Shown here in pieces: positions 31,401-63,746 of a stretch of 64,000 bases of DNA. The first letter of the stretch is position 1; each line of letters begins with the position of its first letter. The translations under genes were made by a program, and so were the position numbers. The stretch is from the NCBI GenBank assembly GCA_028826165.1, contig JAPDFW010000066.1, forward strand, positions 448,275 to 512,274, in the 5' to 3' direction. The notes under the pieces are model-generated. The model did no database searches and was not told the origin of the DNA. It worked only from the letters and a program-made list of their open reading frames with translations. Source of the DNA: Anaeramoeba ignava BMAN (lineage: Eukaryota > Protista > Anaeramoebae).

Positions 31401-32609
31401 ATTCACGAAGCAATGGAACAACAAACAGTAACAATTTCAAAAGCAGGAATACACACAAGTCTTAACGCAAGATGCTCTGTAATTGCAGCAGCAAATCCAA
31501 TTTATGGACAGTATGATCGAACTAAAAAACCATCAGAAAATATTGCACTTCCTGATTCGTTACTTTCCCGTTTTGATCTCCTTTTTATTGTTCTTGATAA
31601 TATTGATCCTGAATCAGATCGCCTCATTTCTAATCATGTCCTTAAAATGCATATGTGGCAAAATGATGTCGCAAATGACCCTAATTTTTCAAATACTCAA
31701 GATGAAAAAGATGATCAAGATTTTGACATTTTTTTAAATAGAAATCCTTTTGAAGAAATGACTAAAAAATGGCAGAAAAAAAAAAGCCAGAAAAATAAAA
31801 GGTATCAAACAAGGAAAAGTTCGCAAAGAAACAGCAAATCGGAAAGCAAAAGCCAAAATGATGATGATGAGAATTTTGAACAAAAAAAAATTCTTAATAT
31901 TGATTTTTTGAAAAAATACATTTACTTTGCTAAACAAAAGATTGTTCCAAAAATGACCAATGAAGCATCCGAATTTATTGCATCATTTTGGGTTGGCTTA
32001 AGAAGTAAGGAAGGAATAAAAACACAGCCCATTACAGCAAGAACTTTGGAAACACTTATTCGTTTATCAACTGCTCATGCAAAAGCAAGACTCAGTGATA
32101 TCGTGACTGAAGAAGATGCAAAAGGAGCAAGTGATATTATTAATTTTGCATTGTTTCATGAAGCTGAACCAAAGAAGGCTGAAGTTAAAAGAAAGAAACG
32201 ACGAGAACCTGTTCAAATTGAAAATGAAAATGAAAATGAAATCAAAATCAAAATTGAAAATGAAAATGAAAATGAAAATGAAAATGAAAATGAAAATCAA
32301 AATCAAAATGAAATTCAAATCGAAAATGAAAATAATTCAAATGCGATTGAAATGGATCAAGAAATTGATTCGCAAACAAAACCTAATTTATCTAAAACAA
32401 AAGATCGTTTAGTTGAATTTAGAAAATTAATTGCAAATGTTTTCAAGAAAAAACGAACAAATGAAATGCAAATTGAAATTTTAATTCAAGAAATTAATGA
32501 AACAAAACCAAATCCATTATATGATTTTGAAGAAATTGAACCATATTTACATCAACTTCAAGAAGAGAATAGGTTAATGTTTAGTGAAGGAGTTGTGTTT
32601 TTAATTTAA
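28450..32609 (+). CDS. MCM3: DNA replication licensing factor MCM3 (5 exons, intein-containing)
   Basis: Exons 28450-28512, 28577-28677, 28737-28954, 29033-30718, 31267-32609. [80 protein letters not shown]. Confidence 0.96.
29683..30642 (+). mobile_element. Intein (320 aa) with degenerate LAGLIDADG homing endonuclease in MCM3
   Basis: In-frame insert between GDPSTAK and SQL. Starts CFLKNTP; block [11 protein letters not shown]; ends [22 protein letters not shown] followed by Ser. Confidence 0.96.
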
Positions 32610-41410: not shown

Positions 41411-44400
41411 TTAAAAATCGGATTTAATTGATTCATCTAAATCATCGGAATCATTTAGTAAATCGTCATCTGTATTATTTAATAATTCTTCAATTAATTC
41501 CTTTTCATCATTTCTTTTTCGTTTTCTTTTTTGTAACAAAACAATAACCACAATCAAAGAAATTATAAAAACAGGAACAATAACGCTGATTGTAATGATA
41601 ACTGTTTTTGAATTTGAAGTTGAAGGTTCGTTTTGAGTCCAAATCAAAGTTTCTGCAGGATTTCCACATTGATAATGCATATCACATGCTGAAACATTGA
41701 TATAATACTCTTCATTTGCAAGATTTGCTGTTATTTTTTCATTTGTTGATGTTAAATTAATTGAATTCAAATCTTGATTATTTTGTGATTGATAAGTGAA
41801 ATTATAAAAGGAAGGAGAAAGTGTTCCATTTGGTTTATCCCATGAACATATAATTTCATAAATATCTGCTACTGAACAACTTAAATTATTAACTGGCCCA
41901 AATATTAATGTATCAATTGTTGTATTTGAAATATCTCCACATATACCATTTATATCACAAGCTGAAACATTAATATAATATTCTTCATTTGAATGATTCG
42001 CTGTTATTGTTTCATTTGTTATTGCTAAATTAAACGAACCATTATCTTCTCCATTTTGTGATTGATAACTGAAATTATAAAAGGAAGGAATAAGTGTTCC
42101 ATTTGGTTCATCCCATGAGCAACTAATTGTAAATGAATCTGATATTGAACAACTTAAATTATTAACTTTTTCAAATATTAATGTATTAATTGTTATATTT
42201 GAAATATCTCCACATATACCATTTATATCACAAGCTGAAACATTAATATAATATTCTTCATTTGAATAATTTGCTGTTATTGTTTCATTTGTTATTGCTA
42301 AATTAAACGAACCATTATCTTCTCCATTTTGTGATTGATAACTGAAATTATAAAAGGAAGGAATAAGTGTTCCATTTGGTTTATCCCATAAACAAATAAT
42401 TGTAAATGAATCTGATATTGAACAACTTAAATTATTAACTTTTTCAAATATTAATGTATTAATTGTTATATTTGAAATATCTCCACATATACCATTTATA
42501 TCACAAGCTGAAACATAGATATAATATTCTTCATTTGAATAATTTGCTGTTATTGTTTCATTTGTTATTGCTAAATTAAATGAACCAATATCTTCTCCAT
42601 TTTGTGATTGATAAGTGAAATTATAAAATGAAGGAATAAGTGTTCCATTTGGTTCATCCCATGAGCAACTAATTGTAAATGAATCTGATATTGAACAACT
42701 TAAATTATTAACTTTTTCAAATATTGTTGTAGTAATCATCTTTGTTGAAACATCTCCACATATACCATTTATATCACAGGCTGAAACATAGATATAATAT
42801 TCTTCATTTGAATAATTTGCTGTTATTGTTTCATTTGTTATTGCTAAATTAAATGAACCAATATCTTCTCCATTTTGTGATTGATAACTGAAATTATAAA
42901 AGGAAGGAATAAGTGTTCCATTTGGTTTATCCCATAAACATATAATTGTAAATGAATCTGATATTGAACAATTTAAATGATTAACTTTTTCAAATATTGT
43001 TGTATTAATTGTTATATTTGAAACATTTCCACATATACCATTTATATCACAAGCTGAAACATAGATATAATATTCTTCATTTGAATAAATTGCTGTTGTA
43101 TTCCCATTTGGTAAAGTAAAATTAAATGAACCAATATCTTCTCCATTTTGTGATTGATAAGTGAAATTATAAAAGGAAGGAGAAAGTGTTCCATTTGGTT
43201 TATCCCATGAACAAATAATTGTAAATGAATCTGATATTGAACAATTTAAATGATTAACTTGTTCAAATATTGTTGTATTAACTACTACATTTGAAACATC
43301 CCCACATTTATTGTTTATATCACAAGCTGAAACATAGATATAATATTCTTCATTTGAATAATTTGCTGTTATTGTTTCATTTGTTATTGTTGATATTAAA
43401 TTAAACGAACCATTATCTTCTCCATTTTGTGATTGATAAGTGAAATTATAAAATGAAGGAATAAGTGTTCCATTTGGTTTATCCCATAAACATATAATTG
43501 TAAATGAATCTGATATTGAACAACTTAAATTAACTTGTCCAAATATTGATGTAGTAATTATTATGTTTGAAACATCTCCACATTTATTGTTTATATCACA
43601 AGCTGAAACATTAATTTGATATTCTTCATTTGAATAATTTGCTGTTATTGTTTCATTTGTTATTGTTGATATTAAATTAAACGAACCATTATCTTCTCCA
43701 TTTTGTGATTGATAACTGAAATTATAAAAGGAAGGAGAAAGTGTTCCATTTGGTTTATTCCATGAACAACTAATTGTAAATGAATCAGATATTGAGCAAC
43801 TTAAATTATTAACTTTTTCAAATATTGTTGTATTAATCATCTTTGTTGAAATATCCCCACATATACCATTTATATCACAGGCTGAAACATAGATATAATA
43901 TTCTTCATTTGAATAATTTGCTGTTATTGTTTCATTTGTTATTGTTGATGCTAAAATAAATACACCATTATCTTCTCCATTTTGTGATTGATAAGTAAAA
44001 TTATAAAAGGAAGGAGAAAGTGTTCCATCTGGTTCATCCCATGAACATATAATTGTAAATGAATCTGATATTGAACAATTTAAATTATTAACTGGTCCAA
44101 ATATCGATGTAGTAGCTGTCGTTGTTGAAATATCTCCACATATACCATTTATATCACATGCTGAAACATTAATTTGATATTCTTCATTTGAGTAATTTGC
44201 TGTTATTGTTTCACTTGTTGATGTTAAATTAAACGAACCATTATCTTCTCCATTTTGTGATTGATAAGTGAAATTATAAAAGGAAGGAATAAGTGTTCCA
44301 TTTGGTTTATCCCATGAACATATAATTGTAAATGAATCTGATATTGGACAATTTAAATGATTAACTTTTTCAAATATTGTTGTAGTAATTGTTGTATTTG

Positions 44401-47400
44401 AAATATTTCCACATATACCATTTATATCACAAGCTGAAACATAGATATAATATTCTTCATTTGAATAATTTGCTGTTGTATTCCCATTTGGTAAAGTAAA
44501 ATTAAGTGAACCATTATCTTCTCCATTTTGTGATTGATAAGTAAAATTATAAAATGAAGGAATAAGTGTTCCATTTGGTTTATCCCATAAACAAATAATT
44601 GTAAATGAATCTGATATTGAACAATTTAAATTATTAACTTTTTCAAATATTGTTGTAGTAATTGTTGTATTTGAAACATTTCCACATATACCATTTATAT
44701 CACAAGCTGAAACATAGATATAATATTCTTCATTTGAATAATTTGCTGTTGTATTCCCATTTGTTAAAGTAAAATTAAGTGAACCATTATCTTCTCCATT
44801 TTGTGATTGATAACTGAAATTATAAAATGAAGGAATAAGTGTTCCATTTGGTTCATCCCATGAACATATAATTGTAAATGAATCTGATATTGAACAATTT
44901 AAATTATTAACTTGTTCAAATATTGTTGTAGTAACTGTTGTATTTGAAACATTTCCACATATACCATTTATATCACAAGCTGAAACATAGATATAATATT
45001 CTTCATTTGAATAAATTGCTGTTGTATTCCCATTTGGTAAAGTAAAATTAAGTGAACCATTATCTTCTCCATTTTGTGATTGATAAGTAAAATTATAAAA
45101 TGAAGGAATAAGTGTTCCATTTGGTTTATCCCATGAACATATAATTGTAAATGAATCTGATATTGAACAATTTAAATTATTAACTTTTTCAAATATTGTT
45201 GTAGTAACTATCTTTGTTGAAATATCTCCACAATGGTTGTTTATATCACAAGCTGAAACATTAATTTGATATTCTTCATTTGAATAATTTGCTGTTATTG
45301 TTTCATTTGTTGATGTTAAATTAAAAGAACCATTATCTTCTCCATTTTGTGATTGATAACTGAAGCTATAAAATGAAGGAATAAGTGTTCCATCTGGTTT
45401 ATCCCATGAGCAACTAATTGTAAATGAATCAGATATTGAACAACTTAAATTAACTGGTCCAAATATTGATGTAGTAACTATCTTTGTTGAAATATCTCCA
45501 CATATACCATTTATATCACAGGCTGAAACATTAATTTGATATTCTTCATTTGAATAGTTTGCTGTTATTGTTTCATTTGTTGATGTTAAATTAAAAGAAC
45601 CATTATCTTCTCCATTTTGTGATTGATAACTGAAGCTATAAAATGAAGGAATAAGTGTTCCATTTGGTTTATCCCATGAACAACTAATTGTAAATGAATC
45701 AGATATTGAACAACTTAAATTAACTTGTTCAAATATTGTTGTAGTAACTGTTGTATTTGAAACATTTCCACATATACCATTTATATCACAAGCTGAAACA
45801 TAGATATAATATTCTTCATTTGAATAGTTTGCTGTTATTGTTTCATTTGTTGATGTTAAATTAAAAGAACCATTATCTTCTCCATTTTGTGATTGATAAC
45901 TGAAATTATAAAATGAAGGAATAAGTGTTCCATTTGGTTTATCCCATGAACAACTAATTGTAAATGAATCTGATATTGAACAATTTAAATTATTAACTTG
46001 TCCAAATATTGTTGTAGTAACTGTTGTATTTGAAACATTTCCACATATACCATTTATATCACAAGCTGAAACATAGATATAATATTCTTCATTTGAATAG
46101 TTTGCTGTTATTGTTTCATTTGTTATTGTTAAATTAAACGAACCAATATCTTCTCCATTTTGTGATTGATAAGTGAAATTATAAAATGAAGGAATAAGTG
46201 TTCCATTTGGTTCATCCCATAAACAAATAATTGTAAATGAATCTGATATTGAACAACTTAAATTAACTTCTCCAAATATTGTTGTAGTAACTGTTGTATT
46301 TGAAACATTTCCACATATACCATTTATATCACAAGCTGAAACATAGATATAATATTCTTGATCTGAATAATTTGCTGTTATTGTTTCATTTGTTATTGTT
46401 AAATTAAGTGAACCAATATCTTCTCCATTTTGTGATTGATAAGTGAAATTATAAAATGAAGGAATAAGTGTTCCATTTGGTTTATCCCATAAACAAATAA
46501 TTGTAAATGAATCAGATATTGAACAACTTAAATTAACTTCTCCAAATATTGTTGTATTAATTGTTGTATTTGAAACATTTCCACATATACCATTTATATC
46601 ACAAGCTGAAACATAGATATAATATTCTTGATCTGAATAATTTGCTGTTATAGTTTCATTTGTTATTGTTAAATTAAATGAACCAATATCTTCTCCATTT
46701 TGTGATTGATAAGTGAAATTATAAAATGAAGGAATAAGTGTTCCATTTGGTTCATTCCATGAACATATAATTGTAAATGAATCTGATATTGAACAATTTA
46801 AATTATTAACTTGTCCAAATATTGTTGTATTAACTATTTTATTTGAAATATCTCCACATATACCATTTATATCACAAGCTGAAACATATATATAATATTC
46901 TTGATCTGAATAATTTGCTGTTATTGTTTCATTTGTTATTGTTAAATTAAGTGAACCAATATCTTCTCCATTTTGTGATTGATAAGTAAAATTATAAGAT
47001 GAAGGAGAAAGTGTTCCATTTGGTTCATCCCATAAACAAATAATTGTAAATGAATCTGATATTGAACAACTTAAATTATTAACTTGTTCAAATATTAATG
47101 TATTAACTGTTGTATTTGAAATATCTCCACATATACCATTTATATCACAAGCTGAAACATAGATATAATATTCTTCATTTGAATAATTTGCTGTTATTGT
47201 TTCATTTGTTATTGTTAAATTAAGTGAACCAATATCTTCTCCATTTTGTGATTGATAAGTAAAATTATAAGATGAAGGAATAAGTGTTCCATTTGGTTCA
47301 TCCCATAAACAAATAATTGTAAATGAATCTGATATTGAACAATTTAAATTATTAACTTGTCCAAATATTAATGTATTAACTGTTGTATTTGAAACATCTC

Positions 47401-48799
47401 CACATATACCATTTATATCACAAGCTGAAACATAGATATAATATTCTTCATTTGAATAATTTGCTGTTATTGTTTCATTTGTTATTGTTAAATTAAGTGA
47501 ACCAATATCTTCTCCATTTTGTGATTGATAACTGAAATTATAAAATGAAGGAGAAAGTGTTCCATTTGGTTCATCCCATGAGCAAATAATTGTAAATGAA
47601 TCTGATATTGAACAACTTAAATTAACTTGTCCAAATATTGTTGTATTTGAAATTGTGGAAACTTCTCCTTTAGAATCTCCTTGGCATTCAGATGTTTGAC
47701 AAGCCCATATTGAAATTGAATAATTGCTCCCCGAATTTAAATTACTCAAGTTGTATGAAGTAGATGAATTGTTAATAGTAGCATCTCCCACTTCTTCTTC
47801 CATATTTAAAGAATAAGAAATAGCATAATGATCAAGTTTTGGAACACCTTCAATGATTGGAACATTTGGATAATTCCATGAAATATCAATAGATGTTGAT
47901 GATAATGTTATTGCTGATAAATTTTTTACTGAATCAATTCTAGTTGTTAAATTGACTTCATTTGTAGAATTCCCACATTGATCCTCTGCATCGCAAGCTA
48001 TTATTTGAATTGTGTAATTTTCATTCCCAGAAATATTTGGATAATTCGAAGAATCAAAAATTTGATAAAGAGTATTGTCTTGTACTTCCGGATTTTGAAT
48101 TATATTCCAATCTCCGTTATAATTGATCTTATATGTGATATTGTCTTGAGAAACGTTATACCAATAACATTCAAAAGAAGAAAACAAAGTTGTACAGTTG
48201 ATAATAGTAACATTATCTGGAGTTACTTGTTCATGAAAGTTGAGGTAATTTTGAAGATTTGAAAATGGGATTTTGGATTCTATCCAATTTTTTCCGTTGA
48301 ATTTAAACAAATAGACTGAATTTTGATTTGAATTTAGATTTGAATTTTGATTTGAATTTTGATTTGAATTTAGATTTGAATTTTGATTTGAATTTTGATT
48401 TGAATTTATCCCCTTTGTTTGAACTAGCAAAATATCATCTTCTAAAATTGAACAACTTGAGCCAAAATAACCATTTGCAATTCCATCACTTGCAATAAGT
48501 GTTGCTTCTTTATTCCAATTTGATCCTTCCTTTCGATAAACATAAACTTTTCCTTGGTTTTTATTGTTTCCAATTGAAGCTTCAGGAAATCCTATAAGAA
48601 TTAAATTTTTTGAAACACTAATTTCCTTGCCACATTTTTCTTGATAATTTTTTTGATTAAAATCTTTTGGAATGCATTCAATTTTGTGGAAATTTGTTTT
48701 TGCTTTCTGTTTTTCTGTGATTTGGTAAGTTTTGCTATTGAAAATTGTTATTGATAAAGAAAGGAAAATTAAAATAAAAAATAGTTTGTTTTGTTTCAT
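41411..48799 (-). CDS. 2462-aa type I membrane glycoprotein: signal peptide, FG-GAP-like repeat, ~24 fibronectin type III domains, TM, short acidic tail
   Basis: Intact intronless ORF with 22 near-identical ~90-aa repeats (ICxWDxPNG..Y..YxIxVSAC) plus 2 divergent ones. TM VIITISVIVPVFIISLIVVIVLL is followed by QKRKRKR. Confidence 0.9.
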   Translation of the reverse strand: MKQNKLFFILIFLSLSITIFNSKTYQITEKQKAKTNFHKIECIPKDFNQKNYQEKCGKEISVSKNLILIGFPEASIGNNKNQGKVYVYRKEGSNWNKEATLIASDGIANGYFGSSCSILEDDILLVQTKGINSNQNSNQNSNLNSNQNSNQNSNLNSNQNSVYLFKFNGKNWIESKIPFSNLQNYLNFHEQVTPDNVTIINCTTLFSSFECYWYNVSQDNITYKINYNGDWNIIQNPEVQDNTLYQIFDSSNYPNISGNENYTIQIIACDAEDQCGNSTNEVNLTTRIDSVKNLSAITLSSTSIDISWNYPNVPIIEGVPKLDHYAISYSLNMEEEVGDATINNSSTSYNLSNLNSGSNYSISIWACQTSECQGDSKGEVSTISNTTIFGQVNLSCSISDSFTIICSWDEPNGTLSPSFYNFSYQSQNGEDIGSLNLTITNETITANYSNEEYYIYVSACDINGICGDVSNTTVNTLIFGQVNNLNCSISDSFTIICLWDEPNGTLIPSSYNFTYQSQNGEDIGSLNLTITNETITANYSNEEYYIYVSACDINGICGDISNTTVNTLIFEQVNNLSCSISDSFTIICLWDEPNGTLSPSSYNFTYQSQNGEDIGSLNLTITNETITANYSDQEYYIYVSACDINGICGDISNKIVNTTIFGQVNNLNCSISDSFTIICSWNEPNGTLIPSFYNFTYQSQNGEDIGSFNLTITNETITANYSDQEYYIYVSACDINGICGNVSNTTINTTIFGEVNLSCSISDSFTIICLWDKPNGTLIPSFYNFTYQSQNGEDIGSLNLTITNETITANYSDQEYYIYVSACDINGICGNVSNTTVTTTIFGEVNLSCSISDSFTIICLWDEPNGTLIPSFYNFTYQSQNGEDIGSFNLTITNETITANYSNEEYYIYVSACDINGICGNVSNTTVTTTIFGQVNNLNCSISDSFTISCSWDKPNGTLIPSFYNFSYQSQNGEDNGSFNLTSTNETITANYSNEEYYIYVSACDINGICGNVSNTTVTTTIFEQVNLSCSISDSFTISCSWDKPNGTLIPSFYSFSYQSQNGEDNGSFNLTSTNETITANYSNEEYQINVSACDINGICGDISTKIVTTSIFGPVNLSCSISDSFTISCSWDKPDGTLIPSFYSFSYQSQNGEDNGSFNLTSTNETITANYSNEEYQINVSACDINNHCGDISTKIVTTTIFEKVNNLNCSISDSFTIICSWDKPNGTLIPSFYNFTYQSQNGEDNGSLNFTLPNGNTTAIYSNEEYYIYVSACDINGICGNVSNTTVTTTIFEQVNNLNCSISDSFTIICSWDEPNGTLIPSFYNFSYQSQNGEDNGSLNFTLTNGNTTANYSNEEYYIYVSACDINGICGNVSNTTITTTIFEKVNNLNCSISDSFTIICLWDKPNGTLIPSFYNFTYQSQNGEDNGSLNFTLPNGNTTANYSNEEYYIYVSACDINGICGNISNTTITTTIFEKVNHLNCPISDSFTIICSWDKPNGTLIPSFYNFTYQSQNGEDNGSFNLTSTSETITANYSNEEYQINVSACDINGICGDISTTTATTSIFGPVNNLNCSISDSFTIICSWDEPDGTLSPSFYNFTYQSQNGEDNGVFILASTITNETITANYSNEEYYIYVSACDINGICGDISTKMINTTIFEKVNNLSCSISDSFTISCSWNKPNGTLSPSFYNFSYQSQNGEDNGSFNLISTITNETITANYSNEEYQINVSACDINNKCGDVSNIIITTSIFGQVNLSCSISDSFTIICLWDKPNGTLIPSFYNFTYQSQNGEDNGSFNLISTITNETITANYSNEEYYIYVSACDINNKCGDVSNVVVNTTIFEQVNHLNCSISDSFTIICSWDKPNGTLSPSFYNFTYQSQNGEDIGSFNFTLPNGNTTAIYSNEEYYIYVSACDINGICGNVSNITINTTIFEKVNHLNCSISDSFTIICLWDKPNGTLIPSFYNFSYQSQNGEDIGSFNLAITNETITANYSNEEYYIYVSACDINGICGDVSTKMITTTIFEKVNNLSCSISDSFTISCSWDEPNGTLIPSFYNFTYQSQNGEDIGSFNLAITNETITANYSNEEYYIYVSACDINGICGDISNITINTLIFEKVNNLSCSISDSFTIICLWDKPNGTLIPSFYNFSYQSQNGEDNGSFNLAITNETITANYSNEEYYINVSACDINGICGDISNITINTLIFEKVNNLSCSISDSFTISCSWDEPNGTLIPSFYNFSYQSQNGEDNGSFNLAITNETITANHSNEEYYINVSACDINGICGDISNTTIDTLIFGPVNNLSCSVADIYEIICSWDKPNGTLSPSFYNFTYQSQNNQDLNSINLTSTNEKITANLANEEYYINVSACDMHYQCGNPAETLIWTQNEPSTSNSKTVIITISVIVPVFIISLIVVIVLLQKRKRKRNDEKELIEELLNNTDDDLLNDSDDLDESIKSDF

Positions 48800-49283: not shown

Positions 49284-51098
49284 TTAAAAAATTAAACAAT
49301 TTTCTTTGTTTTTCTCTTTTTTTCTTTTTTGATTTTGATTATTAAATTTATTAATTAATAAATCAAATAAATTTGGATTTGTTTGATTTAATTGAAAATA
49401 ATCAATTCCTCTTTCTAACTCATCAATTATTTCTTGTGTAATTTCAATTCCATCTTTAATTTGATTTGAATAAATCCAATATTCAAATATTTGAAATGAT
49501 TTATTATTTAATTCACTATAATCTGTAACTTTATTAGATTTATCTTCTGTTACAGATAAAAACATTCCTAGATATAATTCACTTCTCATTATTAATATTA
49601 ATTTAGGAAATTTATATTGTTTTTCTTTTCTTTCAATAATAAAATCTTTTTCATTTTCATTTTCATTTAAATAAATTCTTTTCATTGTTTCTTCAATTTT
49701 TTCATTTGAATTTATAATTTCTTTAATTTCAAAATATAATATTGGATTTATTTTGGAATTATTTGAATAAATCATTTCAAATATTTGATTTGATTCTTTA
49801 ATTGATTTTTTTGAAATAATTTCTTTAAGTTTTTCAATTTCATTTTCATCTTTTAATCTATATTTCAATATTAATTTATGAGCTGAGATTATTTCTCCAT
49901 TTTCTGTTTTAAATGAAATATTACAAAATTCTTTTCTTCTAAATAATTTTATCAAATCTTCTTCAAGATTGGAAAAAGAAAAAGGAGAATAATAAATAAA
50001 TGAATTGTTAAATCCACAAGAAATATGATAATTAGAAATATTTTCATTAAATTTTAATTTAGGAAGTTCAATTTGAATTGGAATTAATTGATGTTGTTCA
50101 TTTTCATTTCCTAATTGGCCATAAAAGTTACCACCAAATCCAATTAATTTTGAATTGGAAGTTAAAATCAAAGTATGATTAAATCCACAAGAAAAATCAA
50201 GAATATTATCATTTTCAAATAAAGATGATTTGATTTCAGTAAATTCATAAATATTTCCATTTTTGCCAAGTCCATTGAATTCATAATAACCACATGAATA
50301 AAGTTTTCTTTTTTGATTTTGATTTTCATTTTCATATTCAATTAACATTATTGAATAAATACTTCCACATTGAATATCAATTATTTTGCCTTTTGGAATA
50401 TTTTGGATTTTGATTAATTTATCAATTTTCCACTCTTGTCTTAATTCACCTAATCCAAGTTGGCCAGAATAATTCCATCCGCATACAAATAATTCTTGAT
50501 TTGAATTTAAAAGAAAAGCATGATTTGAAGAATTTCCTGAAAATATTTTAGAAACATTTTTCATCATTAAAATTGGTTTTTCTGCTTTATTAAGTGTTTT
50601 AGAATTAAAACCAAGTTGACCATATTCATTTGAACCAATTCCATAAGCATTATGATTTGAAGTTAATAAGTAAATTGAATTCTTTCCAGAAACAATATCT
50701 TGAATTATTCTATCATTTGTATCTTCAATTGATGATGAAATATTGATAATTTTATTTTGATTTTTTGAATTAATATCTTTTCCTTTGGCAAATACATTTC
50801 CTTCTATTGTTAAAATAGCTTCATTGTGAAAACCAACAGTTACTTTTTGAATATTTTCAATTTGGATTTTTGAAGGATTTTGATTTGAATATTCTTCATT
50901 TAAATATTCTATTGCTTTTCCATTTTTAAAAAGGAAAATTGTTGAAAAAAAACTTGTTGAAATTTGTTTAATTTGTTTTTCATTTTCATTTTCATTTTCA
51001 TTTTCAAATTTAAATTGAATTGGTTTTGTTATTTTATTTGGTTCATTTTCGATAAATTTTGGATATTGATTCCAACCAAAAAATATAATTTCATTCAT
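49284..51098 (-). CDS. RCC1-repeat + BTB-like protein with polybasic-CaaX (CLIF) end
   Basis: GxNxxGQLG and SCGxxHT repeats; FCNISF..AHKLIL and DFII..KLILIMRSELY.GMF BTB-like motifs. Confidence 0.9.
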   Translation of the reverse strand: MNEIIFFGWNQYPKFIENEPNKITKPIQFKFENENENENEKQIKQISTSFFSTIFLFKNGKAIEYLNEEYSNQNPSKIQIENIQKVTVGFHNEAILTIEGNVFAKGKDINSKNQNKIINISSSIEDTNDRIIQDIVSGKNSIYLLTSNHNAYGIGSNEYGQLGFNSKTLNKAEKPILMMKNVSKIFSGNSSNHAFLLNSNQELFVCGWNYSGQLGLGELRQEWKIDKLIKIQNIPKGKIIDIQCGSIYSIMLIEYENENQNQKRKLYSCGYYEFNGLGKNGNIYEFTEIKSSLFENDNILDFSCGFNHTLILTSNSKLIGFGGNFYGQLGNENEQHQLIPIQIELPKLKFNENISNYHISCGFNNSFIYYSPFSFSNLEEDLIKLFRRKEFCNISFKTENGEIISAHKLILKYRLKDENEIEKLKEIISKKSIKESNQIFEMIYSNNSKINPILYFEIKEIINSNEKIEETMKRIYLNENENEKDFIIERKEKQYKFPKLILIMRSELYLGMFLSVTEDKSNKVTDYSELNNKSFQIFEYWIYSNQIKDGIEITQEIIDELERGIDYFQLNQTNPNLFDLLINKFNNQNQKRKKEKNKENCLIF

Positions 51099-51461
51099 TT
51101 TTGAAAAGAAAAGAAAAAAAATGAAAAAATAATTTTTGGAATTTTAATTTTGATTTTAATTTTAATTTTGATTTTAATTTTGATTTTAGTTTTAATTTTA
51201 ATTTTAATTTTAATTTTAATTTTAATTTTGATTTTAGTTTTGATTTTAATTTTAATTTTAATTTTAATTTTAATTTTAATTTTAATTTTAATTTTAATTT
51301 TAATTTTAATTTTAATTTTAATTTTGATTTTTAATTTTAATTTTAATTTTAATTTTAATTTTAATTTTGATTTTAATTTTAATTTTAATTTTAATTTTGA
51401 TTTTGATTTTAATTTTAATTTTGATTTTAATTTTAATTTTAATTTTAGTTTTGATTTTAAT

Positions 51462-53270
51462 TTAAAAAATTAAACAATTTTCTTTGTTTTTCTCTTTTTT
51501 TCTTTTTTGATTTTGATTATTAAATTTGTTAATTAATAAATCAAATAAATTTGGTTTTGTTTGATTTAATTGAAAATAATCAATTCCAATTTTAATTTCA
51601 TCAATTATTTCTTGTGTAATTTGAATTTCATCTTTAATTTGATTTGAATAAATCCAATATTCAAATATTTGGAATGATTTATTACTTAATTCACTATAAT
51701 CTGTAACTTTATTAGAAGTATCTTCTGTAACAGATAAAAACATTCCTCGATATAATTCACTTCTCATTATTAATATTAATTTTGGAAATTTATATTGTTT
51801 TTCTTTTCTTTCAATTATAAAATCTTTTTCATTTTCATTTTCATTTAAATAAATTCTTTTAATTGTTTCTTCAATTTTTTCATTTGAATTTATAATTTCT
51901 TTAATTTCAAAATATAATTTTGGATTTATTTTGGAATTATTTGAATAAATCATTTCAAATATTTGATTTGATTCTTTAATTGATTTTTTTGAAATAATTT
52001 CTTTAAGTTTTTCAATTTCATTTTGATTTTGATTTAATCTATATTTCAATATTAATTTATGAGCTTCAATTATTTCTCCATTTTCTGTTTTAAATGAAAT
52101 ATTACAAAATTCTTTTCTTCTAAATAATTTTATCAAATCTTCTTCAAGATTGGAAAAAGAAAGAGGAGAATAATAAAGAAATGATTTATAAACTCCACAA
52201 GAAAGATGATAATTAAAAATATTTTCATTAAATTTTAATTTAGGAAGTTCAATTTGAATTGGAAATGATTGATCTTTTGTATCTCCAGTTCCTAATTGAC
52301 CATAGAAATTATATCCAAATACTATCAATTTTGAATTAGATGTTAAAATCAAAGTATGTGAACCACCAACAGGAAAATCAATAATGTTATCATCATTCTC
52401 AAATAAAGATGATTTGATTTCAGTAAATTCATAAGTATCTCCATTTTTGCCAAGTCCATTATATCTATAATCTCCACATGAATAAAGTTTTCTTTTTGGA
52501 TTTTCATTTTCAATCAACATTATTGAATGACAATTTCCACATTGAATATCAATTATTTTGCCTTTTGGAATATTTTGGATTTTGGTTAATTTTTGGATTT
52601 TATCTTCTTTTATTGATTCTCCTAATCCAAGTTGACCAAATCTATTATCTCCGCATCCAAATAATTCTTGATTTGAATTTAAAAGAAAAGCATGATAAGA
52701 AGAATTTCCTAAAAATATTTTAGAAACATTTTTCATCATTAAAATTGGTTTTTCTGTTTTTTCAAGTATTTCAGAATTAAAACCAAGTTGACCGTAATAA
52801 TTTGAACCAATTCCATAAGCATTTTGATTTGAAGTTAATAAATAAATTGAACTGTATCCAGAAACAATATCTTGAATTATTCTATCATTTGTATCTTCAA
52901 TTAATGATGAAATATTGATAAATTCATTTGGATTATTTGGATTAATATCTTTTCCTTTGGCAAATACATTTCCTTCTATTGTTAAAATAGCTTCATTGTG
53001 AAAACCAACAGTTACTTTTTGAATATTTTCAATTTGGATTTTTGAAGGATTTTGATTTGAATATTCTTCATTTAAATATTCTATTGCTTTTCCATTTTTA
53101 AAAAGGAAAATTGTTGAAAAAAAACTTGTTGAAATTTGTTTAATTTGCTTTTCATTTTCATTTTCATTTTCATTTTCAAATTTAAATTGAATTGGTTTTT
53201 TGATTATTTTTGGTTTATTTTTGATAAGTTTTGGATATTGATTCCAACCAAAAAATATAATTTCATTCAT
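51462..53270 (-). CDS. RCC1-repeat + BTB-like protein with polybasic-CaaX (CLIF) end
   Basis: Tandem paralog with the same motifs. Confidence 0.9.
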   Translation of the reverse strand: MNEIIFFGWNQYPKLIKNKPKIIKKPIQFKFENENENENEKQIKQISTSFFSTIFLFKNGKAIEYLNEEYSNQNPSKIQIENIQKVTVGFHNEAILTIEGNVFAKGKDINPNNPNEFINISSLIEDTNDRIIQDIVSGYSSIYLLTSNQNAYGIGSNYYGQLGFNSEILEKTEKPILMMKNVSKIFLGNSSYHAFLLNSNQELFGCGDNRFGQLGLGESIKEDKIQKLTKIQNIPKGKIIDIQCGNCHSIMLIENENPKRKLYSCGDYRYNGLGKNGDTYEFTEIKSSLFENDDNIIDFPVGGSHTLILTSNSKLIVFGYNFYGQLGTGDTKDQSFPIQIELPKLKFNENIFNYHLSCGVYKSFLYYSPLSFSNLEEDLIKLFRRKEFCNISFKTENGEIIEAHKLILKYRLNQNQNEIEKLKEIISKKSIKESNQIFEMIYSNNSKINPKLYFEIKEIINSNEKIEETIKRIYLNENENEKDFIIERKEKQYKFPKLILIMRSELYRGMFLSVTEDTSNKVTDYSELSNKSFQIFEYWIYSNQIKDEIQITQEIIDEIKIGIDYFQLNQTKPNLFDLLINKFNNQNQKRKKEKNKENCLIF

Positions 53271-53350
53271 TTTTGAAAAGAAAAGAAAAAAAATGAAAAA
53301 ATAAATTTTGGAATTTTGATTTTGATTTTAATTTTGTTTTGATTTTAATT

Positions 53351-55132
53351 TTAATTTTGATTATTAAATTTGTTAATTAATAAATCAAATAAATTTGGAT
53401 TTGTTTGATTTAATTGAAAATAATCAATTCCAATTTTAATTTCATTAATGATTTCTTGTGTAATTTGAATTCCATCTTTAATTTGATTTGAATAAATCCA
53501 ATATTCAAATATTTCAAATGATTTATTATTTAATTCACTATAATCTGTAACTTTATTAGAAGTATCTTCAGTTACAGATAAAAACATTCCTAGATATAAT
53601 TCACTTCTCATTATTAATATTAATTTAGGAAATTTATATTGTTTTTCTTTTCTTTCAATTATAAAATCTTTTTCATTTTCATTTTCATTTAAATAAATTC
53701 TTTTCATTGTTTCTTCAATTTTTTCATTTGAATTTATAATTTCTTTAATTTCTGAATATAATTTTGGATTTATTTTGGGATTGTTTGAATAAATCATTTC
53801 AAATATTTGATTTGATTCTTTAATTGATTTTTTTGAAATAATTTCTTGAAGTTTTTCAATTTCATTTTCATCTTTTAATCTATATTTCAATATTAATTTA
53901 TGAGCTTTGATTATTTCTCCATTTTCTGTTTTAAATGAAATATCACAAAATTCTTTTCTTCTAAATAATTTTATCAAATCTTCTTCAAGATTGGAAAAAG
54001 GAGAAGGAGAATAATAAAGAAATGATTTATAAGATCCACAAGAAATATGATAATTGGAAATATCTTCATTAAATCTTATTTCAGGAAATTTAATTTGAAT
54101 TGGAAATGTTTGATCTCCTGTATATATACTTCCTGATTGACCATAAAAATTATTTCCAAATACTATCAATTTTGAATTAGAGGTTAAAATCAAAGTATGA
54201 TTATATCCAATAGAAAAATCAATAATATTATCATCATTTTTAACTAAAGATTTGATTTCAGTAAATTCATAAGTATCTAGATCTTTATCAAGTCCATTAA
54301 CTTCCCAACTTCCACATGAATAAAATTTTCTTTTTGGATTTTCATTTTGATTTTCAATCAACATTATTGAATGAGACTTTCCACATTTGATATCAATTAT
54401 TTTACCTTTTGGAATATTTTGGATTTTGGTTAATTTTTGGATTTTCTTCTCTTCTTTTCTTTTTGATTCATTTAATCCAAGTTGGCCAGAATAATTCCAT
54501 CCGCATCCAAATAATTCTTGTTTTGAATTTAAAAGAAAAGCATGATAAGAAGAATTTCCTGAAAATATTTTAGAAACATTTTTCATCATTAAAATTGGTT
54601 TTTGTGTTTCTATTAATTTTTTAGAACCAAGTTGGCTAAGATGATTTGCACCAATTCCATAAGCATTGTGTTTTAAAGTTAATAAGTAAATTGAATTAGC
54701 TCCAGAAACAACATCTTGAATTATTCTATCTTTTTTATTTTTGATTAATGATGAAATATTGATAAATTGTTTTGGATAATTTGGAATTTTTGGATTAATA
54801 TATTCTCCTTTTGCAAATACATTTCCTTCTATTGTTAAAATAGCTTCATTTTCAGAACCAACAGTTACTTTTTGAATATTTTCTTCAATTTGGATTTTTT
54901 GAATATTTTTTCTTGAATATTTTTCATTTAAATATTCTATTGCTTTTCCATTTTTAAAAAGGAAAATTGTTCCAAAATAACCTGTTGAAATTTGTTCAAT
55001 TTGTTTTTCATTTTCATTTTCATTTTCATTTTCAAATTCAAATTTGAATTGAATTGGTTTTCTTATTTTTTCTGGTTCATTTTCAATAAGAACTGGGTGT
55101 TTATTCCAACCAAAAAATAAAATATCATTCAT
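53351..55132 (-). CDS. RCC1-repeat + BTB-like protein lacking CaaX
   Basis: Tandem paralog; ends NNQN*. Confidence 0.9.
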   Translation of the reverse strand: MNDILFFGWNKHPVLIENEPEKIRKPIQFKFEFENENENENEKQIEQISTGYFGTIFLFKNGKAIEYLNEKYSRKNIQKIQIEENIQKVTVGSENEAILTIEGNVFAKGEYINPKIPNYPKQFINISSLIKNKKDRIIQDVVSGANSIYLLTLKHNAYGIGANHLSQLGSKKLIETQKPILMMKNVSKIFSGNSSYHAFLLNSKQELFGCGWNYSGQLGLNESKRKEEKKIQKLTKIQNIPKGKIIDIKCGKSHSIMLIENQNENPKRKFYSCGSWEVNGLDKDLDTYEFTEIKSLVKNDDNIIDFSIGYNHTLILTSNSKLIVFGNNFYGQSGSIYTGDQTFPIQIKFPEIRFNEDISNYHISCGSYKSFLYYSPSPFSNLEEDLIKLFRRKEFCDISFKTENGEIIKAHKLILKYRLKDENEIEKLQEIISKKSIKESNQIFEMIYSNNPKINPKLYSEIKEIINSNEKIEETMKRIYLNENENEKDFIIERKEKQYKFPKLILIMRSELYLGMFLSVTEDTSNKVTDYSELNNKSFEIFEYWIYSNQIKDGIQITQEIINEIKIGIDYFQLNQTNPNLFDLLINKFNNQN

Positions 55133-57087: not shown

Positions 57088-57351
57088 TTCAATTTTATTA
57101 TAAAATAGAGAACTAAAAAAATTAAAAAAAAAAGAAATAAAAAAATTTTCATTTTTCATTTTAATATTTTTTTTTCTTTCAATTTGCAAAAAAAAATAAT
57201 AACTTTTTTTTTTAACAAAAAAAACAAAAACAAAAACAAAAACGAAAACGAAACAAATTTAAAATTTAATTTTAATTTGTTTTTTTTTTTTAAAACAAAA
57301 AAATTTGCATTTAATTAATTGAATATAAAACAAAAACAACAACAAAAAAAA

Positions 57352-58551
57352 ATGGTTGATCGATTTTCAATAAATAACTTTGGACACTTTGATTCAATAT
57401 TCAGTGATATTGACACTTCATTTGGAAACGAAATTGATTTTTTTGGAAATGAATATAAAGAAGAAAACATTTCTGAAGAATTCAATCTATTTTTCGTATC
57501 AAATTTTGGAGTTAATACACTTAATGAAGAGAATATTGAACAAAAAGATTCAAAGGAATTGTTTCCAAAAGAAAATGACAAGCAAGAAGTTTTAAAAGAA
57601 AATGACAAGCAAGAAGTTTTAAAAGAAAATGACAAGCAAAATTCTAATAATAAAAATAATAAAAATAATAAGAATAATAAAAATAATAAGAAAAATAACA
57701 AGTCTTCAAAAAACTGTCGAAAAACGAAAAAACGAAAACAAAAAAATTCAAATCAAAATTCAAGTCAAAATTCAAATGACAAAGATCCTGTCATTGAAAA
57801 ATATCGACGAAGACTTGAGCTGAATAGAGTTAACGCCAAAAAATCACGCGAAAGGAAAAAACTATACGTACAAAATCTGGAATCCACTGTTAGTTCTTTA
57901 AAAGATGAACGAAATGATTTGAAATCAAAATTGGAACAAATTAACGAAAAAAACGAAAAATTAAAAAACGAAGCAGATTCTTTGAGACAAAAACTGCAAA
58001 CGATGATCCAAACCGAGCAAAAACCAAACGATCCTTCATTCACGTTCTTTTCCATATTGTCTTATATTGGAGCACTTCCCAAATTTGATAAAAACAAAGC
58101 AAATCAAAACTTAAAAAGCGAAGAAGACAATTTACAAAAAAACAAGTCAAGCGAATCACAAGAACCAAAACAACGATACTCAGTACGATCTCAAGCAAGA
58201 TACAACAATCTCTCAAATACTCAAAATATCGGTGTTGCTTTGTTTGTATTTTTTATTGCTTTTGGCTTTTTTTTCAAAAGAGGATTTTTTTACTTCCGCC
58301 AAAAGACGACTGAACAAATTATGTTTTCTTTAATATTTTTTGAAGATAATTTTAGCCATTTTGTTTCTCAAGTTCATGACAAGTTTGTTTTAATGGACAA
58401 TCAAACTGAAAAGTTGTCTTTCTGCCCAAAAAATGAACTCATCATTCTTCCAATTATTGAACCTATTACAACAACTACAACAACTACTACAACAACAACT
58501 ACAACTGAAACAATTCCTTTGAATCACAAAATTTTAATCAACGCAAATTAA
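57352..58551 (+). CDS. Membrane-anchored bZIP transcription factor (ATF6/CREB3-like)
   Basis: RRRLELNRVNAKKSRERKKLYVQNLE + leucine zipper; hydrophobic segment IGVALFVFFIAFGFFF. First ATG at 57352. Confidence 0.85.
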   Translation: MVDRFSINNFGHFDSIFSDIDTSFGNEIDFFGNEYKEENISEEFNLFFVSNFGVNTLNEENIEQKDSKELFPKENDKQEVLKENDKQEVLKENDKQNSNNKNNKNNKNNKNNKKNNKSSKNCRKTKKRKQKNSNQNSSQNSNDKDPVIEKYRRRLELNRVNAKKSRERKKLYVQNLESTVSSLKDERNDLKSKLEQINEKNEKLKNEADSLRQKLQTMIQTEQKPNDPSFTFFSILSYIGALPKFDKNKANQNLKSEEDNLQKNKSSESQEPKQRYSVRSQARYNNLSNTQNIGVALFVFFIAFGFFFKRGFFYFRQKTTEQIMFSLIFFEDNFSHFVSQVHDKFVLMDNQTEKLSFCPKNELIILPIIEPITTTTTTTTTTTTTETIPLNHKILINAN

Positions 58552-58586
58552 GGAAATTTTTTCTTTTCTTCATTTTCAAAATTTAA

Positions 58587-61500
58587 AGCCTTCCCCGCAA
58601 GCAAAAATATTTTGTCATTTTTTCCCCTTTTGAAGTGACAGCTGTCACTTTGAAAAAAAAATAAAAAAAAATAAAAAATTTGATTTTTCCCCTTTTTATT
58701 AAAAAAAATAATTAAAGAATAGATTAAAAAAATATCAATTTTTTCTATTTGGAAAAAGAAAAAGAAATACTACTTTTTTTTTATTTGGGACAATCTCCAT
58801 AATTTCATAATCCAAAACTTTTCAAACAAATTTTTATCTTTTGGAAAATTTTGTTGAATATTTCTTCATTTTGGTTCTTTTTTCTATTCTGTTTCATACA
58901 ACTGAACTTGATTATTGAGAAAGAAATTGATGAGAAAAATTCAATTAATGATATGAATAAGAAATTTATGAGAATTCAAAAGATAATTGTTTTGATCAAT
59001 TTTTCAAATTTTTTCTTTTTTCATTTTGAAATATATTAATTTTAACTGAATCCAATACAAAATTCAATTATTTCCTTCAACAAAAATTCTTTATTTTTTC
59101 TTTGTAAAAGATTTTGAAAAATAAAAGATGTGAAAAATGATTTGAAAAAAAATCAATTTAACGTTTAAAAATTAGAGAGATTCATCAAAAAAGAAAAAAT
59201 GAATTGTGCCGATATTTTTTGGGGTGATTTTGTATTATATCTTGAATGAATTCTGGTGATTTGAATAATAATTGAATTCTGGTTGATTTACAAATACATT
59301 TTAGGATCATGAATCTAAATCTGACAGCAAGTGAATGGTTGATAATTTCCACTGCTTTTTCAATAGGAATTTTAATAGTGAAAATCAACCATAAAAAAAG
59401 TAGTACTGAATTCCCGCATTGGGCACCATCTTCTTGGATTTTTTTCTTGACTAGTTCTTCAATTTCATAATTTTCATTTATGCGCCATTTAATATACTGT
59501 TTTATATGATTTCCCATATCTTCTACTTCCTTTTTTGCATATTTTGGAATAGTGTTATATAAATAGATTTTATGAAATTGTTTATCAATCAAAAAACACA
59601 CATAATGATGATTAGTCAAATATATTATTGGTATAATATCTAAAGGTTCCTTTTCATCCCATTTCATCAATCTTTCGCATTCTTCAAAATTAAATAATAT
59701 TGTTCTTAATTGCTTCCAACCATCCACTCCTTTCTCAAATTCTATTAACGATTCAAACAATTCAATTTGGTTTCTGAGTTCTGGAGACATCAACCAATTA
59801 GAAAAAGACATCTATTTTGTTCATTCTCGGTCGATTTTCAACGAAATTGTTGAAATGGTCAATCAATTTGGGATAACTTTTTTTTGAAGCTTCTAAAAAT
59901 TTATCAAAATCTTCATAAATTTGATTTCTTCTGTTTTTGAATGCTTGAAAATCTTTGTATTCTTGATGTAATTTTTGGATCGTGGGTTCAAAATCTAATC
60001 TGGTAAATTCTACATCATTTTGATATTGAGGATATAAAAAATTTACTAATCCAATAGACAAATCTTGAGACTCCAGCATTTGCTCTAAGTCCCATCTTTT
60101 CCACCATGATCCTTGTATCCCACTTGGAAGATACAGATTAATGGGGTTATCAATTAAATCATTCAGAAATCTCTTTATTTCTTCTCTTTTGTTGTGTATA
60201 TAATCTTCCTCAAGGAGTTGAATTTCTCTGGGTTTGGGAAGTTGAATATTTTGGATAGCATTATGATTGTTTGTTTTTGTTTGAATGGGAACGTCATTTT
60301 TATTATCGATTTTACTTTTTCTTGATAACAATGAAGGATTTTGATTGGAAAAAATGTGCAAATCATGTATATTGGGACATGAGTTCTCTGTTTCCTTTTG
60401 AGTTTGTTTATGAGTTTCTTTTGGATTTAACATCTCCAAAGCATCTTTGAAATGGATTTGAAATGTAGGAAGCAAGGAATAGTTTTCAAAATCAAACAAA
60501 TTGGGTTGAATCTTACTTAATAAAAATGTTGAGATCAAGTTTTTGTTTTTAAACTTGCTTCTTTTTGGTGACTTTCTACTTCTTTTTTTTTCTTTTTGAG
60601 GAGGGACAATTTCTTCTGAGCTATTTCTTTTCTTTTTTTTGATTCTTGAGAGAGTTAAATTCTTCAAATAAGATGTACTTTTTTGAAATATACCTGGTAA
60701 AGAGAGATGAAGTAATTCTTTTTGCCATTCCATATCTTTTTCTTTTTTTTGATTTTCTTGTAATACATTTTTTTCATTGAATTCAATTTCGTTTTCTTGG
60801 TTTCCTAAATTTATTTCCTTTTCATTTTCTTTTTCCTATTTTGGTTCCAATCAATGATGGCAAGTTGATAAAGAAGATTATAATTTTTAAAATGACTTAT
60901 TTTTTCGCGATAACCGTTTAAAGTGCTGAAAAAGGATTCGTTGTAGCTTGTGGATAAAAAATATCTACAAAAAATTAATTTTTTAATAATGGTGAAATCA
61001 GAAAGTATCATTTTGAAGAATGCTTCCTCCTCTTTGTTTGTAATTTTTTTATCTTCAGGATGTTTATTTTCGTTTGAATTTTCATTTTTTGTGCATGGAC
61101 TATTTTTTGGGCAAAGGGAATGATCGCCTTTAGCGTGGAGAAAATATCTAAACCATTCAGATAATAAAGTCGTCATATCGCCTTGGCAAGATTTTGCACA
61201 TCTTAGAAAATGGAAAATTATAGATTCTTTCCATGACATCAAATGTTCTTTTTTTTTTCGCATTTTCTCGCTTTCTTCTTTTGAGCGTTTCTTTTTATTT
61301 GATCCACAGAATTTGTTAACAAGTTTGTTGTATCTTCTTCGAATTGATCTAGTTACGTGCCAGGGATCTAGTAAATGCATGATATTCGGGAAACACTGTT
61401 TAACTTTAGATGAGGTATTCTGGTCATGGACCGTGGCAAGGATATTGTATTTCTCCGAAAGCTTTTGTATTCCTTTGGGAATCAAAAATCCCTCTAAACT

Positions 61501-63646
61501 TTTGTGGATGGATGGTTGAAGTTGAGCTCATTCTTTGGTAATGTATAATTCTGTTAAATTTTGTGTTCGCTTCAATAAAAATTGCGCATGCATCTGCAGC
61601 TCGGTTATTCCGATGTGAATATGCTACATCATGAGAAAAAATCGAATCTATTTTTTTAGTGGAATCGATTTCTGGTTGAGATTCATTCTCTATCTGTTGA
61701 TTTGAATTATTCTTGTTCTGATCTTTTCTTTCGATTGAATTTTTTTTTTCATTACTTATGACTAATTGATATATTTTTTCTTTGAGGTCTAGAAGGAAGA
61801 TGAATTTGTCAATTCTTTATTAATAAATAATTTTCTTGAGGAGTTAGCAATTTTATCAATATCTTTATCAGATATAAAGTGATTTTTCATATGTTCCATG
61901 GTTTGTGTTGAAGAAGGATCAGTAGATTGTTCTACTTCCTCTGCAGATAAATCTAGAATTGATTCTGCCATACTATTAACTATTGGAGCTAATTTGATTT
62001 TAACTTCATCGCAATAATCTTGCAACCCATCTTGTGTCTTGATTTCAAATAAGTTGAGGAATCTATAAAATTTTGAAATACTGATTCCTACAATTTTTGT
62101 CCCAATATTAAATGCAGATCTCATTTTGCGATCGTTTTCATATAGTTTTCTGAATTTTTTAATTGATTTAGATTCAATTTTTGTTTTTTCCTTTCCTTTT
62201 CCCTTTTCATTTTGATTGTTTTCATTTTGATTGTTTTCATTTTCACCATCAAGTGAGGTTTGATTTTGAGAGAGATTTTTGAGTGAATCTCTTTTCATTT
62301 GTTCTTCCTCCTTCTTTTTCCTTTCTTTTCGGTTTAGTAATTTTCCAATAATATACACTATCTCTCAAATTCCCAATTTTAATCTGATTTTTTTCCACTT
62401 GTGTTTTTAAATCTTGATTTTCTTTTGTAAGTTGATACATCAAATGTGAGTGGATTGTGATTTGTTGATTCTTCAAATTTTCTTTTTCCTTTTGAACTTC
62501 ACACAGATTTTCTCTAAGTTCCATTTCAGTTCTAGCGATGCTGTCACATTTTTCATTGAGGATATTCACCCAAGAGAGAGTTGTTTTCAATTGTTTTTTG
62601 ACTTCTTTATAAATTGAGAATTGGTGATTGATTTTTTTGTTGTTGAACCAACTCTTTTAAATAATCTAATTCTTGTTTGAGGCAGCTATTTTCTTCTTTG
62701 ATATCCTTGTTTTCCTGAATAAATTTTTTCTGAAAAAAGATGGAATGAGAAAAAATTAAAAAGAAGCAAAATAACTAAAATATACCATTTTTAAATTATC
62801 TCTATAGCACCGATTACATATTTTATTACTTTTTCTTCTTGGAGTAGATTCTAATTTCAAAAATAATTCATTTTTGGATGGAACTTGGGCTTTAGGGATT
62901 TTTTTTTTCCCACAAATATAACAAGTTATTGCTTTCATGTAAAAAACGAATTAAAACAAAGATTTGAAAAAAAAATAAAAAGATAAAACAGAATAAGAAA
63001 ATAGAAAAAAAGAAAAAAATTTTAAAAAAATGTCAAAAGAAAAATGTTTTGTGATCTTGTTGTTTTTTTTTTATAAAATATTTTTTTTTATTTAAATAGT
63101 GTTTGTCAACAAATAAGAAAAAAAAGTAAGAGAAAAAAACAAATAAAAATAAAAATAAAAGAAGATTAATGGTTGAAATCGACAAAATAAATGATCAATG
63201 AGTTGATATAAAAATTTGAAAAAATGCCAATTTTTTGATCAACAAATAAGCATCTTATTTCTATAAAACACGAAAGTTTTTGAATTTATTTGAACCTAAA
63301 TAAGAATATAAAATAATCTATAAATTAAGCATGTTGAAAAAAATAGGACCAGATTCTGAAAGTTCTGCAACAATAGAAATTATTGATTTCAATAAAATTT
63401 TAATAATTTTTTTCATTCTTGAGCATGAAAATTAAATTTAAATCTAATCTTCTAATTATTTATATGCAGCAGCTTGAGTATATCATTTCCTAAAATGGAT
63501 ATTTTGAAAAAAAAATCACCTGATAAGCTTCGAAAGTTAGATATATTTGCTTTTATTAATCATTTTTCTCAATTTTTTGAGAATGATTACACTTAATTTT
63601 TTGTAAGTGTAAGTAAAAGAAAATATTTTTGCTTGCGGGGAAGGCT
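58587..63646 (-). mobile_element. Kolobok-superfamily DNA transposon, 5060 bp
   Basis: Perfect 27-bp TIRs AGCCTTCCCCGCAAGCAAAAATATTTT (58587-58613 / 63620-63646), TTAA on both flanks (58583-58586, 63647-63650), AG...CT (RR...YY) termini, internal DDE transposase. Confidence 0.9.
59185..62938 (-). CDS. Transposon polyprotein: C4 zinc finger - coiled coil - DDE transposase - Ulp1-like cysteine protease (one intron, six 1-nt frameshifts)
   Basis: CYIC..CNRC; intron 62785-62730; SHDVAYSH, TVHDQN, HLLDPWH, STSYNESFFS, LAIIDWNQN; protease HHYVCFLID..IYLYNT..IQEDGAQCG. Confidence 0.75.
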
Positions 63647-63746
63647 TTAAAGTTAATAAAAAGAAGACAACTAAAAATTTCTTTTTCCGTTTTTTTTTTT
63701 ATTAAAATTTCTTTTTGAAAAAAAAAAAAAAGAAATTGGAAAATCA

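Follow-up and report, generated by a model that had tools for sequence, protein, structure and literature searches.

Positions 58587-63646 of a 64,000-nucleotide stretch of the Anaeramoeba ignava BMAN genome (contig JAPDFW010000066.1, positions 448,275 to 512,274 of the forward strand; the whole stretch is called the window) hold a complete Kolobok DNA transposon. Its single gene is reconstructed as a transposase that is fused at the C-terminus to a predicted cysteine protease of clan CE, the Ulp1/SENP fold. The best explanation of the whole is an active Kolobok transposon with one fused protein, in which the attached isopeptidase would strip ubiquitin-like tags. This explanation, in which the element is autonomous, recently mobile, and moves by cut-and-paste, is given a probability of roughly 0.62. 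The features are listed in window coordinates; the sister family named there is a second Kolobok family of the same genome.

58583-58586, no strand: TTAA target-site duplication (TSD), exact sequence, with a single TTAA at the empty sites of three other copies.
58587-58613, plus strand: 27-bp terminal inverted repeat (TIR) that begins with AG, at the downstream end of the gene, from the TIR pattern.
59185-60175, minus strand: predicted clan-CE (Ulp1/SENP-fold) cysteine protease, 329 aa with a long helical insert, from profile, structure model, and alignment; His at 59607-59605, Asn at 59556-59554, Gln at 59436-59434, and Cys at 59418-59416, with a one-base break near 59806.
60176-60830, minus strand: transposase C-terminal helix and basic, low-complexity linker with Lys/Arg runs and a possible nuclear localization signal; 27% identity to the sister family.
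60831-61645, minus strand: Kolobok DDE core, from motif alignment; Asp at 61630-61628, Asp at 61425-61423, DxxH at 61368-61357, H-x4-H-x2-C-x5-C zinc finger at 61137-61093, and Glu at 60939-60937.
61646-62729, minus strand: start of exon 2, a coiled-coil-like, helical N-terminal region, from copy comparison and in part with 39% identity to the sister family; the window copy is broken at 62635, 62320, and 61797.
62730-62785, minus strand: predicted 56-nt GT-AG intron, from copy alignment and the public gene model P0001.
62786-62938, minus strand: exon 1, 51 codons with a putative CxxC...CxxC zinc finger, from copy alignment and P0001; no Pfam match.
63620-63646, minus strand: 27-bp TIR at the upstream end of the gene, from the TIR pattern.
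63647-63650, no strand: TTAA TSD, exact sequence.

The ends of the element lie exactly where an earlier note on this DNA, made from the letters alone, had placed them, with a perfect 27-bp TIR (AG...CT) on each side and TTAA just outside. The TIR pattern has 10 matches in the 42.8-Mb assembly, which account for both ends of five full-length elements, each on its own contig; the reversed pattern, which served as control, has none. The five copies are 5,056-5,106 bp long and 98-99% identical, their flanks are unrelated, and all of them carry the TTAA TSD (5/5). Paralogous empty sites, which the note had suggested looking for, were recovered by a joined-flank search for L002, L004, and L005. They lie in AT-rich repeats and carry a single TTAA each, none of them a double or absent one, and TTAA is therefore a true 4-bp duplication.

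Alignment of the five copies yields a majority frame of 51 + 1,185 codons, that is, one gene of 1,236 aa, close to the single frame of ~1230 aa that had been pieced together before; the consensus from copies, proposed in the note as a check, speaks for one gene and not for separate genes. Exon 1 (153 nt, 62938-62786) is followed by the one GT-AG intron already recognized (56 nt, predicted at 62785-62730), and the public model of copy L002 (P0001) is spliced identically. A second intron was considered for mending the frame and rejected. The C4 zinc finger and coiled coil that had been described return as a CxxC...CxxC motif and a coiled-coil-like region, the finger being putative and without a Pfam match. 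The window copy has six net breaks, at 62635, 62320, 61797, 61503, 60837, and 59806. Their number and rough places agree with the six single-base indels reported earlier, but two of them exceed one base (5 and 2 bases missing), and a further 2-base and 4-base loss at 60567/60545, common to the window copy and L005, cancel each other.

The fusion does not depend on mending the frame, because two copies have natural open reading frames (ORFs) that overlap and share the frame: a 939-aa ORF in L003 runs from the core into the protease start and a 469-aa ORF in L004 from the linker to the stop, with 156 identical residues in common. This overlap, together with the unbroken frame of the sister family, speaks against a transposase and a protease encoded as separate genes. 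On sequence grounds, the transposase-protease fusion is real, and separate genes are effectively excluded. In the public annotation of contig C89, model P0007 joins L003 to an adjacent armadillo-repeat gene (“protein aardvark”), which is probably an annotation artifact.

The sister family carries the same fusion at G000:C68:366667-371191 (L038, L052) and C69:258430-262953. Its frame of 1,534 codons, unbroken on C68, holds the transposase core and the protease and is inflated by long internal Asn/Glu/Lys microsatellite tracts. The downstream end reads GAAGGCT followed by TTAA; a pattern search gave no matching 5′ end. Identity between the two Kolobok families is 49% in the core, 38% in the protease, and 27% in the linker, and the higher value of the protease relative to the linker would, as sequence identities go, fit selection acting on the protease. 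Further Kolobok relatives, older or with deletions, lie at G000:C35:497100-497825, C35:505709-506053, C68:465746-469052, and C1:87225-87590; the last of these (P0012) belongs to a more distant family.

Kolobok membership is supported by four sequence features, all of which are present: the TTAA TSD, the RR..YY ends, the DDE/DxxH motifs, and the zinc finger in the core. The catalytic triad is D421, D489, and E651 in P0001 numbering, with DPWH at 508-511, and is retained in the sister family. All motifs picked out at first reading (HDVAYS, HDQN, DPWH, and NESF in the core, H..N..Q..CG in the protease) were found again. The H-x4-H-x2-C-x5-C zinc finger, whose H, H, and C are invariant (alignment A3), sits between DxxH and the Glu, a position in which nearly all Kolobok transposases have one, unlike those of MuDR, P, and hAT (PMC9587614). 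Compared by eye with trichomonad Kolobok (PMC9587614 Data S5), the core matches motif by motif. The first Asp is followed by A-x-S-H-x-R-N, and DPxH, H-x4-H-x2-C, and NES at the Glu appear as in Tritrichomonas and Trichomonas families; PQSLE is found as in Kolobok-3_TrFo and HD at the second Asp as in Kolobok-2_TV. The trichomonad families (Kolobok-2, -3, and -6_TrFo; Kolobok-1 and -2_TV) thus resemble the element in TTAA TSD, RR..YY ends, DDE with DxxH, H-x4-H-x2-C zinc finger, PQxLE, and D-x-A-x-S-H-x-R-N at the first Asp (PMC9587614).

Word-seeded protein searches with the core returned A. ignava proteins only, and Pfam gave no significant match on the protein pieces of the element. A core profile search reached a PF20700 protein at E 2e-9; it found two proteins outside A. 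ignava and two metagenome loci, one of which (L064) is a Kolobok-like ORF without the protease. In the Atlas, the core stands beside PF20700 clusters, one of them mostly parabasalian. Two other assignments were rejected. piggyBac shares the TTAA TSD but has 5′-YY termini and a DDE_Tnp_1_7 domain, whereas the ends here are AG..CT and no such Pfam match was obtained; MuDR/Mutator has a variable TSD of 9-11 bp and a core without zinc finger, whereas the element has a fixed 4-bp TTAA and a zinc finger.

The C-terminal 329 aa are modeled as a clan-CE fold with a complete His-Asn-Cys active site and oxyanion Gln. The domain begins near 60175 and not at 59811, as had been assumed; copies L002 and L004 have it in an open frame. 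Single-sequence folding gave a pLDDT (predicted local distance difference test) of 42 and was not usable; the model that was used has values of 70-85 over most of the core. It superimposes on yeast Ulp1 with a Z of 13.5 (root-mean-square deviation 3.5, 192 residues), tied with SENPs, SnCE1, and NEDP1, and the clan-CE fold expected at this place is thereby borne out, with H, N, Q, and C kept. Rows 1-29 of the fold comparison are clan-CE-fold enzymes, and unrelated folds have a Z of at most 5.4; the top hits of the Foldseek list are clan-CE folds throughout. The 329 aa alone give weak matches to SnCE1 and XopD, a five-sequence profile finds ChlaDUB1 at E 2e-5, and the Atlas neighbors are C48 clusters. 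His190, Asn207, Gln247, and Cys253 are invariant across five families of 18-38% identity and align with the ChlaDUB residues. The Asn where Ulp1 usually has Asp, already noticed before, is an accepted third triad residue in clan CE (PMC1847702). Tyr or Phe directly follows the catalytic His; an aromatic gatekeeper marks deubiquitinases and GG-cleaving ubiquitin-like proteases (PMC7391069).

Ulp1, SENP1/2/3/5/7, NEDP1, SnCE1, XopD, ChlaDUB1, and SseL/ElaD share with the domain the fold (Z 10-13.5), the His-Asx-Gln-Cys order, and the aromatic residue after His; they differ from it in sequence, with 10-20% identity only, and the substrate is not readable from their ranking. Likewise, specificity is not readable from the fold, because small variable regions of clan-CE enzymes switch it (PMC4961225). 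A genome-wide PF02902 scan yielded six other loci, none of them one of these elements, and searches with this protease did not match the six.

In the proposed mechanism, one spliced mRNA would give the 1,236-aa protein, whose frame comes from copy comparison and whose expression is predicted. Binding of the element ends may fall to the zinc finger at the N-terminus together with the helical region. The DDE core would excise the element and insert it at TTAA, for which TSDs and empty sites speak and for which the chemistry is taken from family knowledge. The clan-CE domain would stay attached at the transpososome as an active isopeptidase and remove a Gly-Gly-ended ubiquitin-like tag, most likely SUMO, possibly ubiquitin or NEDD8. 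Its targets would be near the transposase and may include the transposase itself and chromatin-silencing or DNA-repair factors. As judged from the sequence, tag removal is a better reading than self-cleavage and fits the gatekeeper residue; it may serve to escape silencing. At least 127 ubiquitin/SUMO-like domain matches occur genome-wide, including several polyubiquitin-like arrays (C75, C65, C147), in a Pfam scan that did not separate SUMO from ubiquitin.

Several observations weigh against the active, tag-stripping element. The mean pLDDT of the protease model is 65, and Pfam C48 (PF02902) does not match the protease above cut-off; of the comparison with Peptidase_C48 suggested in the note, the fold held and the Pfam match did not. 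Tyr takes the place of the usual Trp after the catalytic His. Protein and metagenome searches found no relative with the transposase-protease fusion outside A. ignava. A fully open copy is absent from the assembly, as each of the five has at least one frameshift, and the break at 60837 is common to two copies.

The strongest of the other explanations, although unlikely, is that the domain plays no deconjugating part in transposition and is passive cargo, a non-catalytic module that binds SUMO/ubiquitin, or an acetyltransferase module. Acetylation by some clan-CE enzymes (PMC4961225) fits this, as do the replacements of Asp by Asn and Trp by Tyr, and many Kolobok families function without a protease (PMC9587614; L064). 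However, the catalytic residues are all kept over five very divergent families in two superfamilies, and Asn is accepted in the triad. It is clearly less probable that the protease cuts its own polyprotein and frees the transposase in the manner of viral clan-CE proteases. The fold matches ASFV pS273R, poxvirus I7, and adenovirus proteases at Z 10.3-10.8, and a long variable linker separates the two domains, but this linker is unconserved and cellular ULPs outscore the viral proteases. Self-cleavage is unlikely because Gly-Gly is missing from the exon-2 frame of both Kolobok families; it is also missing from the Harbinger-type protein P0004 (see below), and Ala-Gly from the exon-2 frame of the five-copy family. 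The polyprotein processing once offered as a role for the protease is thus not supported.

Least probable of all is true breakage of the window copy, or of the whole set of five, as dead but young copies, or separate encoding of the transposase and the protease. The frameshift in every copy and a public annotation that splits the domains can be cited for this, but the breaks are mostly copy-specific (8, 1, 2, 8, and 56 by copy), nonsense changes make up none of the 24 coding substitutions, natural ORFs overlap, and the sister frame is unbroken. Deadness of the window copy alone keeps some probability, whereas separate genes keep almost none. The frameshifts are probably mostly long-read sequencing errors, since their positions mostly differ per copy and nonsense substitutions are lacking. 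The assembly was built from Nanopore R9 data and then polished with Pilon (10.1101/2023.03.03.530753), which makes such error a likely cause. Base runs of at least 4 adjoin 53 of the 75 frameshifts, a weak test in an AT-rich genome.

The same protease is found on a second kind of transposase. Among 1.84 billion representative proteins, its only convincing relatives are the A. ignava proteins P0003 and P0004 (E 3e-9 and 8e-9), and word-seeded searches with the protease returned A. ignava proteins only. Both carry a DDE_Tnp_4/HTH_Tnp_4 transposase in the N-terminal half, as is typical of PIF/Harbinger-ISL2EU. The same protease stands at the C-terminus in a family of four copies (C134, C137, C126), which also share a GC-rich, 17-bp near-palindromic terminus; the transposase type was seen directly for P0003 and P0004, and for this family the protease and terminus were read. 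The protease lineage of all these is that of the Kolobok element, at 18-28% identity; P0003 and P0004 differ from it in transposase, and the element ends are unrelated. At the sequence level, a single genome has one protease lineage attached to transposases of two unrelated superfamilies, and this lineage therefore moved from one superfamily to the other or was acquired twice from a common source. Only tentatively can it be proposed that a lineage-specific His-Asn-Cys deconjugase module was swapped between Kolobok and Harbinger/ISL2EU as a needed counter-defense against host control based on ubiquitin-like tags, with the five-copy Kolobok still active; if so, this Kolobok allows a direct test. 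The His-Asn-Cys protease ends transposases assigned to the Harbinger/ISL2EU type at L043 (C74), L042 (C117), and L044-L047 (C137, C134, C126). L042 and the Kolobok copy L004 have an AT-rich tandem repeat in common as surroundings, and L002 likewise lies inside a local tandem repeat.

Ginger1 transposases are well known to carry Ulp1 and OTU domains at the C-terminus; such domains also occur in Mutator and Helitron elements, and a C19 domain is present in a transposase of T. vaginalis (PMC2836005). Ginger1 and Mutator elements with Ulp1 or OTU resemble the A. ignava element in the C-terminal Ulp1-type protease and in the proposed ubiquitin/SUMO-pathway role. They differ in transposase superfamily, and the A. 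ignava protease stands apart as a divergent His-Asn-Cys lineage, which carries a long helical insert and escapes Pfam C48. Catalogued Kolobok accessories are KolX, DEDDh, PD-D/ExK, His-Me nuclease, and RecQ (PMC9587614), whereas the A. ignava element has an in-frame clan-CE protease; the word “protease” appears nowhere in the text of this 2022 survey. The earlier note knew of no such fusion in Kolobok, and no description of one was found in the literature, where no paper covered dealt with Kolobok and Ulp1 together, Repbase not being covered. Apparently new are the Ulp1-type fusion in Kolobok and the protease lineage common to Kolobok and Harbinger/ISL2EU; the design itself is known from Ginger1/Mutator.

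With the fusion, the kinds of accessory domain recorded for Kolobok rise to six, and a case of module sharing between superfamilies within one host is added. A role of the Ulp1/OTU domains in many unrelated transposons has been proposed (PMC2836005) but is not known to have been tested. At 5 kb and with one gene, the element is compact; it is also very young and inserts site-specifically, and with the protease also on a second superfamily, the effect of a Cys mutation can be compared in two unrelated settings. In addition, the element provides a candidate transposase that targets TTAA and is not related to piggyBac.

In the window, the transposon is inserted 31 bp past the stop of a bZIP gene (57319-58551, plus strand), which has a C-terminal hydrophobic stretch and is ATF6/CREB3-like on inspection. 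An MCM3-like gene (29011-32609, plus strand) is split in its P-loop by an intein with a Hom_end Hint domain; Anaeramoeba is known to be rich in inteins. Three tandem RCC1-BTB genes of ~600 aa each occupy 49284-55132 (minus strand), and a 2,462-aa ORF at 41411-48799 (minus strand) has fibronectin type III-like and FG-GAP repeats and probably encodes a surface protein.

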